Below are positions 690 through 24,190 of a stretch of DNA of 48,710 nt, piece by piece. The DNA comes from Octopus bimaculoides (Eukaryota). The notes beneath the pieces are model-generated. The model ran no database searches and had not been told where the DNA came from. It saw only the letters and a list, made by a program, of their open reading frames with translations. Position numbers and translations under genes: made by a program. Location of the stretch: positions 24,433,972 through 24,482,681 of the forward strand of contig NC_069000.1 in assembly GCF_001194135.2 (NCBI RefSeq), written 5' to 3'. Numbering within the stretch: position 1 is the stretch's first letter; every line of letters begins with the position of its first letter.

Positions 690-810
690 GACCTTCAACT
701 GATGGTGGAAACCAAAATCATTCGTCACTGATATTACCTTACTCTCAGGAAATCCTCAGAGGACTCAGTGGGTTACGCTACATCGAAGCTGCCTACAAGA
801 CTTTAAATTT
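690..810 (+). CDS. Peroxidase-like gene, first exon visible in window (pro-region, PSTDGGNQ...AAYKTLN)
   Basis: cccag acceptor and gtgagt donor; open in one frame; its phase-2 end joins the next exon (TT+C = Phe). No family motif, so weaker support. Confidence 0.65.
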
Positions 811-21800: not shown

Positions 21801-24190
21801 GGCCTTGTGCTAACATTTGAAACTATCGTCATCGTCATTATTATTATTATTATTATTATTATTATTATTATTATTATTATTATTATTGTTATTGCAGAGC
21901 AATTGGCTACTGTTCGTAGCACCACTCTGGCACATATCATCTGCAGAAATACGGCCATAACCAGTATTCAACGAAAGGCATTTGAACCAGTTTCGGCATC
22001 GTAAGTTAGACATATTTTCATCATCTTTCTCATCAATATCTTTATGACACACAAACCAATGAGAGTACCTCAATGCGATCGCTTAAAAATAGTAGTCGAA
22101 CTTTTTTAAAGCAGTCCCTGCTGCCTAAAATAAATAGATAAATAAATGAATAAATAAACAGGAATACAATAGAAATTGCAGTCCGTCTAAGATATGCAAA
22201 CAATTGAAGTGATCACTGCTGGAACGTGTGGATAAACAAGTACGTCAGAATAGTTTTCCTGTAGCAGTTATGTACTGTGTTCATTAAATTCATCAAGGAT
22301 TGAAATGTCAGTGTTGTTCAATCGAGCTCCTTGAGATATATCTGTTCTACACTATATTACAGACACTCGCTTGACACTCTCGTCTCAGAAACTCAATGAA
22401 TCAATATCTAGCCCCTTGGAAACCTTGTAATTGGTAGCGTTATTCACACGTAGTAATACAAAATAAATACAAGATGCATTCTAGAAGTTTTCAGACTTTT
22501 GCAGGAGATATTAATTTTAGGGAAATACAAAACTCTCATCTCCTTATCCACTTACTTTAACGCACTTGTAGAGCTCCAGCCACTCTGTGAAGGCCCCATG
22601 GAAGCCTTCCAAAGGCAAGGTGTCCAGGACCCTTGTCACAGTCTCTTTCATCTTCTTAATGTCTTCAAAACGGCTGCCCCTGAAGTGCTCTTTCACATTG
22701 GGAACTGTAGGGAGTGCGAGGGATAGTTTTGATGCCCATCTCTATCAAGGAGGACCAGGCCTGAATTGTGAGCTAGTGTATTGTCCTGGTGCAAGTGCTT
22801 TGGCCTTTCGCCCTGATATCTCTTCCTGAACTCCCTCAAAACCTCCATAAAGTACTCTTTATTTTTACCGTCTGGCCAGAAGGAACCCAGTGGATATAGA
22901 TGATGCCCTTGTTGTCGAAAAAGAAGATCGTCATGAGCTTCCCGGGGAACTTGCTTTGTTTGGCCTCTTGGGCCAGCAAAAACATGTTCAGCTCATACAA
23001 GTTAATCCATATGCACTTTAGAGCATTTAATAAGTTGCAAAGTGAACTTCCAAATTGTCTTTATGCCCCAACTATATTCTGCAAACTAGTCAGCTGTGAC
23101 AAGCAGTGTTCAGTAAGGAGTGTCCAAAGTGCTGTTAGAACTGGTTCTTTCAATCTAGAATAACAAATTGGCAGGTCAGCTTATTGGATGTATAGTAATG
23201 ATACACTAAAATTACAATAATCTAGGACAGTTATAATTGGCTCTCTTAAAAGAGTCTCAAAACATCTGGAATGCGCCTCGTACATAGGGGACTTGAAAAT
23301 CTCGTGAAATCATGGTTATATAGAAAAAAAAGTGCCAGAACAGGCGCTGGTGTCGCGATTAACCAATGAAATGTTTAATATGCGCACGTGTGTGTGTGTG
23401 TGTATTATCGTTATTATTATTATTATTAAAAGTCAGGGTACAATATAAAACTCTCCAAAGCCACGCATCTCTCACTATATGTAAACACGCACGGACTAGA
23501 AACGGACTAAGCGGAGCAGGAACACACACGAGGACAGAAAGTGTCGCTGAAGAGGTCACAGATGTGTGACGAAAGATTTCCGGACAATGGACATAAGTTA
23601 AAATAAGAACAGTAATAAACGAGTGAAGAACGAATATATAGTGCGTGTGTTTATTAGGCAAAAAAAACAAAACAAAAAAAAACACCATCCCGAAATACAA
23701 TACATATATATATATATATATAAATCTCTTCATCTTTTTCTTTTACAGCAATCCTGCAGTATCATGTACTGAATTGTTAAATATCCAAACGACGACAACT
23801 ACAACACCTACCACAACTACAACACCTACCACAACTACAACACCTACCACAACTACAACACCTACCACAACTACAACACCTACCACAACTACAACACCTA
23901 CTACAACAGTTTGTGATGGTTGGAGTGCATTTTCATTATGGACCGTATGTTTGAATAACATTCGATGTCGCTTCCGACTTTGCACGGCTGGCTTCAACAG
24001 ACGGGCGTGTGAATGTCTAGGTGCTCCAATTGAGGTGGAGGTATGTGCCGGTGGTATATCTTCAATGATCGACTTGGAAAGTATCACTAATGAATTGTAT
24101 GAGAGAACCAAACACTTAATATATAATGGAAGTCTTACTTATAAAATGTTCAACATATATCTCCTAGATGTTATTATTAGCAAAATGTGA
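690..24190 (+). CDS. Animal heme peroxidase-fold protein (peroxidase-cyclooxygenase superfamily), predicted catalytically dead, with Thr-rich linker and TSP1-like C-terminal module; 12 exons in window, 5'-incomplete
   Basis: Exons 690-810, 2653-2885, 5596-5766, 6387-6414, 10349-10461, 11361-11462, 12466-12582, 14312-14777, 17239-17448, 20205-20371, 21898-22000 and 23749-24190 all join by GT-AG with matching phases into one open frame (2273 nt). Family motifs appear in the correct order: YRTADGSCNN, FLDGSVIYGS, CFLGGDKRINEQ, REHNR, QRGRDHG, GDRFWYEN, LAHIICRN. Confidence 0.93.
2653..2885 (+). CDS. Peroxidase-like exon (YRTADGSCNNLQNPYIG...RYEDG)
   Basis: ctcgtag acceptor, gtaag donor; canonical start motif of the peroxidase domain. 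Confidence 0.93.
4379..5009. mobile_element. Non-autonomous DNA transposon (MITE), GGATC-ended TIRs, degenerate 8-bp TSD, internal (TTAGGG)n
   Basis: ggatctatttcaaaacggg at left and cccgttttgaaatagatcc at right; flanks gcattaaa / gcattgga (6 of 8 match). Confidence 0.85.
5280..5490 (-). mobile_element. SINE family A copy (head ggcggcgagctggcagaa)
   Basis: Reverse complement matches the copies at 15326, 15608 and 27685; B-box-like gagttcaaattcc. Confidence 0.85.
5596..5766 (+). CDS. Peroxidase-like exon carrying the distal-site motif (LPNTRYVSN...THMVAAFTQFLNYDIQL)
   Basis: tttccag acceptor, gtatgt donor, phase 1/1; aligns to LPxxRxVS...WGQFLDHD. Confidence 0.92.
6005..6245. mobile_element. 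Tc1/mariner-type terminal fragment
   Basis: Begins TA-CAGGGTGTCC..., typical of Tc1/mariner termini; the second end was not found. Confidence 0.45.
6387..6414 (+). CDS. 28-nt micro-exon (NVDCCRIQTE)
   Basis: Strong ttttatgtttcag acceptor and gtaagt donor; phase 1/2 bridges its neighbours exactly and supplies the expected Cys-Cys pair. Confidence 0.82.
6545..7072. repeat. ~530-bp direct repeat, copy 1 (copy 2 at 8840-9373)
   Basis: End-to-end alignment with scattered substitutions and small indels. Confidence 0.92.
8840..9373. repeat. ~530-bp direct repeat, copy 2
   Basis: Aligns to 6545-7072. Confidence 0.92.
10349..10461 (+). CDS. Peroxidase-like exon (SICMSIQIPRGDPMFPPNYRCMPYTRS)
   Basis: attcacag acceptor, gtaagt donor; matches CxPIxIPxxDPxF...CMxFxRS. 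Confidence 0.92.
10625..10900. repeat. Decayed minisatellite with recurring acattaaaagacctcgactttactg-like motifs
   Basis: Motif recurs at irregular ~30-45-bp spacing. Confidence 0.55.
11361..11462 (+). CDS. Peroxidase-like exon with Ca2+-binding loop (SRQQRNLNTQFLDGSVIYGS)
   Basis: ataactag acceptor, gtaagt donor; matches REQxNxxTSFLDASxVYGS; missed by the ORF track. Confidence 0.92.
12091..12165. repeat. 14-bp minisatellite (GCCCCAGAACGTCT) x ~5.4
   Basis: Read directly; one substitution in unit 3. Confidence 0.95.
12466..12582 (+). CDS. Peroxidase-like exon (GTLKTT...NAFCFLG)
   Basis: tttag acceptor, gtaagc donor; joins the next exon to give CFLGGDKRINE. Confidence 0.9.
13054..14174 (-). 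mobile_element. Two tandem copies of a retroposon 3' end with (AAT)n tail (13054-13480 and 13592-14174)
   Basis: The copies align along their length; copy 1 lacks about 190 bp present in copy 2. Confidence 0.75.
14312..14777 (+). CDS. Peroxidase-like exon (GDKRINEQ...REHNR...YKEYLPLILG...QRFDP)
   Basis: acaacag acceptor after an (ATT)n run, gtaatt donor; the upstream poly-Ile in the ORF track is intronic. Confidence 0.95.
15326..15830 (+). mobile_element. Two tandem SINE family A copies (15326-15546 and 15608-15830)
   Basis: Mutual similarity over ~220 bp with shared head, B-box and ggtcgat core. Confidence 0.85.
17239..17448 (+). CDS. Peroxidase-like exon (DLVAIMLQRGRDHGIPRY)
   Basis: aaaccag acceptor, gtaagt donor; hallmark QRGRDHG. 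Confidence 0.95.
19066..19900. mobile_element. Second MITE of the same family in opposite orientation, perfect 8-bp TSD, central (CCCTAA)n(TTAGGG)n palindrome; inflated by a gap-flank duplication
   Basis: TIRs ggatcttttttaaaacgggg / cccccgttttaaaaaagatcc; gtattttc at 19058-19065 and 19901-19908. Confidence 0.9.
20205..20371 (+). CDS. Peroxidase-like exon (NIDLISGALSE...GPTVACIL...GDRFWYEN)
   Basis: ctaccag acceptor, gtacgt donor; hallmark GDRFWYEN. Confidence 0.95.
20895..21222 (-). mobile_element. tRNA-derived SINE (family B)
   Basis: Reverse complement starts tggctcagtggttagagcg (A box)...gagtttgaatc (B box); related heads near 42035 (+), 16490 (-) and 43920 (-). Confidence 0.8.
21268..21663 (+). 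mobile_element. tRNA-derived SINE (family C) with internal (TA)/(TG) microsatellite
   Basis: gtggtaagaagcttgcttcc...ggttcagtcc head; related pieces at 1320-1480 and 48465-48620. Confidence 0.8.
21898..22000 (+). CDS. Peroxidase-like exon (QLATVRSTTLAHIICRNTAITSIQRKAF)
   Basis: attgcag acceptor after (ATT)n, gtaagt donor; matches QLxEIRKxxLARIICDN. Confidence 0.92.
22470..23280 (-). mobile_element. Internally deleted, degenerate mariner transposon
   Basis: About 30-bp TIRs (24 of 31 matches counted including the TA) flanked by TA; minus strand reads KLMTIFFFDNKGIIYIHWVPSGQTV...LHQDN...PYS with frameshifts. Confidence 0.88.
23749..24190 (+). CDS. Probable last exon: end of peroxidase domain (NPAVSC), (TTTTTP)x~6 linker, TSP1-like module, stop TGA
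   Basis: ttttacag acceptor in phase; DGWSAFSLWTVC...RCRFRLC...C.G...EVEVC resembles thrombospondin type 1. The 3' boundary is uncertain because GT dinucleotides at 24051 and 24054 could be donors. Confidence 0.8.
23787..23905 (+). repeat. Coding 18-bp minisatellite (ACAACTACAACACCTACC)n encoding a Thr/Pro mucin-like repeat
   Basis: About six near-perfect in-frame copies read directly. Confidence 0.92.

Follow-up and report, generated by a model that had tools for sequence, protein, structure and literature searches.

The 48,710-nt stretch of Octopus bimaculoides DNA analyzed here (contig NC_069000.1, forward-strand positions 24,433,972 to 24,482,681; below, the window) is AT-rich, with 36.6% G+C and six runs of N. 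Its plus strand carries, at 690-24190, a gene for a protein of the animal heme peroxidase fold. An earlier reading made from the sequence without database searches (the sequence-only reading) had described it as an intact gene that lost both heme histidines in a concerted manner and was retained by selection for a non-enzymatic role. No second peroxidase gene was found in the window by tblastn or by a profile scan.

The gene model was built from tblastn alignments with the best homologs, a listing of GT/AG pairs that fit the frame, and inspection of the DNA itself. This independent rebuild yields 12 exons and 11 introns (Table 1), joined in phase as in the sequence-only reading, and every motif quoted there was found at its position on the plus strand (QFLNYD, TQFLDGS, GDKRINE, SNIFGM from 14596 onward, and DLVAIMLQRGRDHG). 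All 11 introns are of the GT-AG type, the donor is GTAAGT in seven of them, and the 22 splice dinucleotides are canonical and mostly set in a strong consensus. The joined coding sequence comprises 2301 nt, that is, 766 codons counted from the opening of the frame at 662, or 757 codons from the acceptor at 690. The only stop in the spliced frame is the terminal TGA at 24188-24190, and no frameshift is present. Thus, the hallmarks of a pseudogene, such as intron loss, stops, frameshifts, and broken splice sites, are absent, and the 11 introns occupy positions conserved in the family; measured on the profile, the exon boundaries coincide with those of the O. sinensis paralog P0274. The term "intact" holds for the part of the gene that lies in the window and fails for the gene as a whole. 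Exon 1 lacks an ATG, is preceded by an in-frame stop at 659-661, and aligns with residues ~57-95 of the full-length relative P0278; hence, the start codon and the signal-peptide exon or exons are situated upstream of the window. The practical value of the window is a corrected model of an apparently unannotated octopod gene.

Table 1. Features of the peroxidase-like gene and of its surroundings in the window (HMM, profile hidden Markov model; ORF, open reading frame)
Feature	Position	Strand	Content
Exon 1 (within the window)	690-810	+	Internal exon, alternative acceptor 663; encodes ...PSTDGGNQ...LRYIEAAYKTLN
Exon 2	2653-2885	+	Peroxidase domain begins, CEY..C..YRTADGSCNNLQNPYIGKS; tblastn, splice sites, HMM positions 74-128
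Exon 3	5596-5766	+	Distal heme motif AFTQFLNYDIQL
Exon 4	6387-6414	+	28-nt micro-exon, (N)VDCCRIQT(E); in phase with both neighbors
Exon 5	10349-10461	+	SICMSIQIPRGDPMF...RCMPYTRSTNTPNLDCKL; tblastn, splice pairs, HMM
Exon 6	11361-11462	+	Ca2+-binding loop TQFLDGS at 11387-11407, 4 of 4 ligand positions kept
Exon 7	12466-12582	+	TLKTTTNANGELL...NNAFCFLG; tblastn, splice pairs
Exon 8	14312-14777	+	GDKRINE at 14311-14331; remodeled proximal helix SNIFGMIMTMTAATMFR at 14596-14646
Exon 9	17239-17448	+	DLVAIMLQRGRDHG at 17297-17338
Exon 10	20205-20371	+	NVFNIDL...GDRFWYENSGPGQLTQ; tblastn, splice pairs, HMM
Exon 11	21898-22000	+	QLATVRSTTLAHIICRNTAITSIQRKAFEPVSA; tblastn, splice pairs, HMM
Exon 12	23749-24190	+	End of peroxidase domain (SNPAVSC), linker, Cys-rich module, tail, TGA
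Thr/Pro linker (TTTTTP)x6	23789-23908	+	Exon 12
Cys-rich TSP1-like module	23909-24046	+	Exon 12
C-terminal tail	24047-24187	+	Exon 12; common to clades C and D
Assembly gap	11576-11747		Intron 6, 113 nt past donor
Assembly gap	16867-17028		Intron 8, 210 nt ahead of acceptor
10-N gap	19481-19490		Intron 9
Transposon-fragment ORF	31939-32511	-	Downstream of gene
Transposon-fragment ORF	34398-34772	-	Downstream of gene
Transposon-fragment ORF	35262-35666	+	Downstream of gene
Transposon-fragment ORF	47156-47587	-	Downstream of gene

The encoded protein matches the Pfam animal haem peroxidase family (PF03098) over the whole profile (from position 1 to the last, 530; E 4.9e-149, with a score of 497.7 bits and a cut-off of 25), and in phmmer searches it matches the PDB chains of myeloperoxidase (MPO) and lactoperoxidase (LPO) at E 1e-70 to 1e-75. 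In MPO, Asp94 and Glu242 form covalent esters with the heme, His95 is the distal catalytic residue, and His336 is the proximal ligand, with Asn421 as its partner. Residues were mapped onto human MPO in two ways, by phmmer against the PDB chains and by a MAFFT alignment with 120 homologs. The retained positions are Q91, D96, R239, E242, R424, and the Ca2+ ligands T168, F170, D172, and S174. The changed positions include D94 to N, H95 to Y, M243 to Q, R333 to M, and N421 to M. In exon 3, the motif QFLNYD (5724-5741) consists of Q91 (5724-5726), the replaced D94 (5733-5735) and H95 (5736-5738), and D96 (5739-5741), among others. Exon 8 encodes R239 (14320-14322) and E242 (14329-14331) and, by the family alignment, the replaced R333 (14620-14622) and the position of H336, now Ala (14629-14631); exon 9 encodes the replaced N421 (17312-17314) and the retained R424 (17321-17323). 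The proximal segment reads SNIFGMIMTMTAATMFR, compared with xNxFxxAAFRFGHS in the family. H336 stands opposite Ala in the family alignment or Met in the phmmer alignment, and opposite His in neither; no His occurs in the entire segment between QHITY and TDHAQ. Thus, the two alignments confirm the loss of both heme histidines and of Asn421, and also the retention of the distal Gln, Arg, and Glu, of the fold, and of the cysteines and Ca2+ loop. Judging by these residues, the window protein would lack canonical heme ligation and would be unable to act as a classical heme peroxidase.

The heme site bears a disproportionate share of the losses, which are no part of a general decay. Of the 113 columns conserved in at least 85% of the 120 homologs, the protein keeps 95, including every conserved Cys and all Ca2+ ligands. 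Four of the seven classical heme-site columns are lost, compared with 14 of the 106 other columns (Fisher p = 0.012); when the whole AAFRFGH motif is counted, the loss affects 7 of 10 columns vs. 11 of 103 (p = 7e-5). Losses of a single histidine recur in the family and double losses are rare: among the 120 best homologs, about seven lack one of the two histidines and only one, a scale-insect protein, lacks both.

At the C-terminus, the TSP1-like module aligns column for column with that of the relatives, including the W..W..C, R.R, and C.C positions. The Pfam TSP_1 domain scores below the threshold on this module in the relatives (E 0.005-0.96) and is undetected in the window protein and in P0134. 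The linker ahead of the module arises from a minisatellite in the last coding exon (23795-23907) with an 18-bp unit, ACAACTACAACACCTACC, present in 6.3 copies that are 98% identical. Its translation, (TTTTTP)n, joins the peroxidase domain to the module; the minisatellite is open in all three frames and is absent from all six aligned cephalopod relatives. It is young, and its product looks like a mucin-type O-glycosylation linker.

The informative relatives came from an exhaustive phmmer scan with exon 8, a cluster look-up, and a profile search, and the trees were constructed by neighbor-joining with bootstrap. One monophyletic branch (100% bootstrap) unites the window gene with every other cephalopod peroxidase that has the Cys-rich TSP1-like module at its C-terminus; it also holds the ink-gland melanogenic peroxidases and a lineage with both heme histidines (P0007, P0008, P0288). 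Within this branch, the window gene belongs to clade D together with P0134 (with its variant P0272), P0278, and P0129. The neighboring clade C consists of O. sinensis P0274 (XP_029647729.2, annotated as "chorion peroxidase-like"), its O. vulgaris counterpart P0136 (CAI9737911.1), and the transcript P0276. The topology (window,(P0134,P0278)) has 99-100% bootstrap support, the clade C pair P0274 and P0276 has 96%, and clades C and D group together at 84%.

P0134 and P0272 are 769-residue ORFs on intronless Logan RNA contigs from three runs (SRR27666079, SRR27666065, and SRR27666080) and are 99.6% identical variants; the true ORF of P0134 starts 37 codons further upstream, with a signal peptide. 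P0278 is an 815-residue protein with a signal peptide, encoded by an RNA contig from one run (SRR29271477), and P0129 is a genomic exon 97% identical to it. Thus, the P0134-type and P0278 relatives are expressed and of the secreted type. P0278 may be Sepia-like: its run number is near that of P0002, so that the two may stem from one sequencing project, and P0002 clusters at 90% or more with the melanogenic peroxidase of Sepia officinalis. A 29-residue insert, FQIYSMSVSLYSREAYEALLSMSRAINAV, predicted to be helical, follows the DCC motif in the decapodiform members of clade D (L003/P0134, residues ~186-225, and L008/P0278); neither the window gene nor clades A-C have it. A tblastn search of intron 4 in the window revealed no trace of an exon for this insert.

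The proximal His and Asn421 are absent from every clade C and clade D member found. The core of the proximal helix reads IMTMTAAT in the window gene and VMDMT[LI]AT in the three other members of clade D, and among 389 fetched proteins, no sequence outside clade D has the pattern M.MT.AT. The distal His95 is kept in P0134, P0278, and P0276; it has become Tyr in the window gene and, independently, Arg in O. sinensis P0274. The change of D94 to N is common to the whole cephalopod clade, including the members that keep both histidines, and the other clade D members also vary at Q91 (N or I) and E242 (D). The order of the losses, as reconstructed from this distribution, was D94 first, then the proximal His with Asn421, and then His95 in the window lineage only. 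Hence, two elements of the sequence-only reading have to be given up: the replacement of D94 is no mark of a pseudo-enzyme, and the losses were not concerted.

Both His-less lineages would have octopod and decapodiform-like members. This puts their duplication ahead of the split of the two orders, and parsimony suggests the same date for the proximal His, which was probably lost before octopods and decapodiforms diverged. This dating depends on the RNA contigs being decapodiform, which is suggested by the 65% identity between P0134 and P0278 and by the link from P0278 through P0002 to Sepia. The clade of His-less cephalopod peroxidase homologs is old and so far undescribed; in text searches of the literature, cephalopod "peroxidase-like" or "chorion peroxidase" proteins were encountered only as expression or proteome matches, with no mention of the missing heme residues.

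The relatives of the window gene are under purifying selection. The ratio of nonsynonymous to synonymous divergence (dN/dS) is 0.17-0.23 for P0134 vs. P0278 over 801 codons, and 0.09-0.13 for P0278 vs. P0129, two close species with unsaturated dS of 0.12-0.16. Between the window gene and P0134, dN is 0.58 and dS is saturated, as it is against every available relative; for the window lineage, dN/dS was replaced by Tajima relative-rate tests. Five of the six outgroups give no significant excess of change in this lineage over the expressed P0134 lineage. The selection on His-less relatives and the lack of acceleration in these five tests bear out the earlier view that the gene is more than an enzyme copy in ordinary decay. 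As a proxy for the window protein we used an AlphaFold2 model of P0134, which has a predicted local distance difference test score (pLDDT) of 88.5 and a predicted template modeling score (pTM) of 0.88 and superposes on LPO and MPO with a template modeling score (TM-score) of 0.85-0.89. In this model the remodeled proximal segment is still a high-confidence helix.

Based on these observations, we favor, with a probability of about 0.6, the following reading: the gene is real and spliced and encodes a functional, secreted-type, Ca2+-binding protein of the peroxidase fold that does without canonical heme ligation and works by binding. Its place is in a coleoid clade of peroxidase homologs with the C-terminal Cys-rich TSP1-like module. 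Two sister lineages, C and D, lost the proximal His and its partner Asn421, probably before the separation of octopods and decapodiforms. Afterwards, purifying selection would have preserved in both the fold, the disulfides, the Ca2+ site, the distal Arg, and, as far as the relatives show, the signal peptide, and the window lineage later exchanged the distal His for Tyr. The product would most likely act as a secreted, Ca2+-stabilized binding or scaffold protein through the remodeled pocket, the TSP1-like module, and the tail, involving no redox chemistry, in a manner analogous to PXDNL or to the peroxidase-homology domain of DUOX. The structural, adhesive, or binding role proposed in the sequence-only reading is a putative one, and the window copy itself is presumably secreted, free of heme, and functional.

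The most serious competitor, which we hold to be rather unlikely, is that the window holds a young pseudogene without expression, or a gene in the course of being lost, that descends from the functional His-less clade D, is free of selection by now in this octopod lineage, and by chance is still undamaged. A number of observations weigh in this direction or otherwise against the favored reading. Two word-index searches and the exhaustive exon 8 scan turned up no protein or transcript with a full-length identity above 40%; the best full-length identity to any relative is 39.8%. In the word-index searches, the conserved segments gave best identities of 37-43% and the divergent segments alone gave no match, the exhaustive phmmer scan with exon 8 reached ~48%, and a profile search with clades C and D added only P0278. 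The exhaustive scan listed annotated Octopus proteins, and none from any Octopus falls into clade D; the annotated Octopus proteomes gave members of clades A, B, and C. The window gene has the lowest identity to its own orthologous group, 40% against the decapodiform members of clade D, compared with 63% between the melanogenic peroxidases of Sepia and Octopus. It keeps 84% of the family-conserved columns, whereas the median is 94%, and has additionally lost the distal His that the other clade D members retain. With one outgroup the window lineage evolves faster (p = 0.02). The last exon contains the young in-frame minisatellite, which is uninformative on constraint, the start codon and signal peptide lie outside the window, and the absence of heme is deduced from the sequence.

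However, a pseudogene would hardly preserve 766 stop-free codons in AT-rich DNA with 22 of 22 splice dinucleotides canonical, nor all conserved Cys residues and Ca2+ ligands with the losses clustered at heme-site columns, and five of the six relative-rate tests show no acceleration. The absence of a transcript is weak evidence, since the source genome is seemingly not in the protein collection. The word index, moreover, has holes: P0134, P0274, and P0276 went unlisted even with their own sequences in the query alignment, and its negative results are likewise weak evidence.

Another alternative, in our opinion very unlikely, is that heme or another cofactor is still bound via non-canonical ligands (the Met residues of the remodeled helix, the Met at position 421, or the Tyr at position 95), and the protein is an enzyme with a changed activity and not a pseudoenzyme. 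The distal Gln, Arg239, Glu242 (the heme ester partner), and Arg424, which we take to be a propionate partner, are all retained. The core motif of the Met-rich replacement helix is conserved across clade D, suggesting a new constraint on the pocket, and the fold predicted for P0134, and hence the cavity, would be preserved. Against this stand the Ala at the H336 position in all clade D members in the family alignment and the variation of Q91 (N or I) and E242 (D) among them, that is, an uneven retention of the distal site. Nor do we know of any animal peroxidase-fold protein with Met or Tyr as a heme ligand. The precedent adduced by the sequence-only reading, the peroxidase-homology domain of DUOX, has no proximal His, and its activity is lost (PMC4420034).

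Finally, it is hardly credible that the missing residues are an artifact of the gene model or assembly and that the true transcript uses other exons carrying DHD and FGH: although three assembly gaps fall within the gene span and the 5' end is missing, a six-frame unfiltered HMM scan found one copy of each peroxidase segment and otherwise noise, the gaps are all intronic, with over 100 nt between any of them and a splice site, the homologs align gap-free across the three gap-spanning exon junctions, which leaves no hidden coding sequence, and the His-less helix recurs in the relatives that are known from RNA contigs. The scan used a profile HMM built from the homologs and covered every stop-free segment of the whole 48.7-kb window, where no alternative exon restoring DH or FGH rose above noise. 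Two extra matches with E above 5, one in a later intron and the other in an opposite-strand microsatellite, were rejected as noise. On both sides of the 10-N gap stands the same 229-bp sequence, a perfect direct duplicate (19252-19480 is identical to 19491-19719), which is intronic and almost certainly an assembly artifact resulting from an unmerged overlap.

Other parts of the window contain mobile-element sequences. In the downstream part (24.2-48.7 kb), no host gene was recognized, only transposon fragments. One of the four transposon-fragment ORFs has retroviral-type gag zinc knuckles (zf-CCHC), and another has a weak match to the zf-RVT domain of long interspersed nuclear elements (LINEs). 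The third has a sub-threshold match to the Tc1/mariner domain HTH_Tnp_Tc3_2, and the fourth looks reverse-transcriptase-like by eye and has no Pfam match. The segment 36001-38000 is a local G+C peak (47%, with an average of 37%) with a GC skew of +0.27, an AT skew of +0.12, and many stops in the frame tried; it adjoins the gag-like ORF and probably represents the decayed inner part of a retroelement. Intron 7 contains at 13055-14300 two or three copies of an element that resembles short interspersed nuclear elements (SINEs), has (ATT)n tails, and is 87-93% identical to copies at the O. sinensis P0274 locus, L004 (10484-11029 and 26711-27398). The final (ATT)n tract extends up to the exon 8 acceptor, and read-through is open in frame. 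In total, the window and L004 have many interspersed repeats in common (133 high-scoring segment pairs, 72-93% identity); together with the matching exon boundaries, these point to an octopod as the source of the window. The flanks of two O. sinensis peroxidase loci (L004 and L009) have nothing else in common with the window.

Peroxidase folds without activity are already known from DUOX and PXDNL; the novelty here is an old, cephalopod-wide, selectively maintained His-less clade and its divergent octopod member. To the dead relatives of animal heme peroxidases, clade D adds a free-standing, cephalopod-specific case with expressed relatives that carry signal peptides. It adjoins the enzyme of ink melanin formation; its heme ligands are long gone, and its fold, disulfides, and Ca2+ site are under purifying selection. 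Together, these proteins form a natural series that leads from an active enzyme through the loss of the proximal His to the loss of both histidines and in which the uses of the peroxidase fold without heme can be studied. The genome annotations covered here label such proteins "chorion peroxidase-like," though, as far as their residues indicate, classical peroxidase activity should be impossible. A bolder interpretation, which we consider quite unlikely, is that the two lineages are secreted heme-free coleoid proteins, maintained from a time that precedes the octopod-decapodiform split and sister to the ink melanogenic peroxidase, in which the Met-rich pocket became a new ligand site, and that they serve as regulators or scaffolds of extracellular oxidative chemistry. 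The pocket might then accommodate, for example, indole or quinone precursors of melanin, a metal, or the active peroxidase itself, and the window would provide the first octopod member of the more divergent lineage.

Among known systems, the clade D relatives (P0134/P0272, P0278, and P0129) are the most similar to the window gene. They have the same order of peroxidase fold, Cys-rich TSP1-like module, and C-terminal tail, the same M.MT.AT helix, and the same replacements (R333 by M, H336 by A, D94 by N, and the loss of Asn421). They differ in being only 40% identical, in keeping His95, where the window gene has Tyr, in replacing Q91 by N or I and E242 by D, where it retains Q and E, in the insert after the DCC motif (P0134 and P0278), and in having no (TTTTTP)n linker. 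Clade C resembles the window gene in the loss of the proximal His and Asn421 (AAGQYSTS or AAGRFPAS) and in the presence of the TSP1-like module and tail; in P0274 the distal His is gone as well, replaced by Arg, and the exon boundaries are the same. However, the clade C proteins are 37-39% identical to the window protein, and their proximal motif keeps the AAG..F/Y.. shape instead of M.MT.AT. They are paralogs and not orthologs, and the O. sinensis gene occupies a different locus (L004).

The next-closest clade, with 38% identity, is formed by the melanogenic peroxidase of Sepia officinalis (O18504) and its Octopus and Argonauta orthologs, which share with the window gene the TSP1-like C-terminus and the change of D94 to N. 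In contrast to it, they keep both heme histidines and are more conserved (63-78% identity between orders or families). This ink-gland enzyme is thought to polymerize dihydroxyindoles to eumelanin (PMC4052311). In P0001, P0153, and P0277, the histidines are kept and several other positions are replaced: Q91 by V, D94 by N, E242 by V, R333 by I, and, except in P0153, N421 by D. As these proteins are nevertheless regarded as active, their heme environment must be atypical of the family.

The peroxidase-homology domain of mammalian DUOX1 and DUOX2 is similar to the window protein in having the peroxidase fold and no proximal His, and the PDB chains of DUOX1 are matched at E ~1e-39. In the superfamily tree they are not related. 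The DUOX domain forms one protein with a transmembrane NADPH oxidase, whereas the window protein is free-standing and has a TSP1-like tail; besides the peroxidase domain, Pfam detects no domain in it, be it of the transmembrane, EF-hand, or NADPH-oxidase kind that DUOX has, and the ORF ends at 24190, with only transposon fragments beyond it.

A further parallel is PXDNL, itself a close homolog of the multidomain peroxidasin. Peroxidasin carries leucine-rich repeat (LRR), immunoglobulin (Ig), and von Willebrand factor C (vWC) domains, none of which was detected by Pfam in the window protein. PXDNL is an enzymatically inactive paralog of an active extracellular peroxidase and is highly expressed in the heart (PMC8533639). 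The parallel with the window gene, whose product would be inactive too, lies in the retention of such a paralog; the loss of activity in PXDNL is an independent event that occurred in vertebrates.

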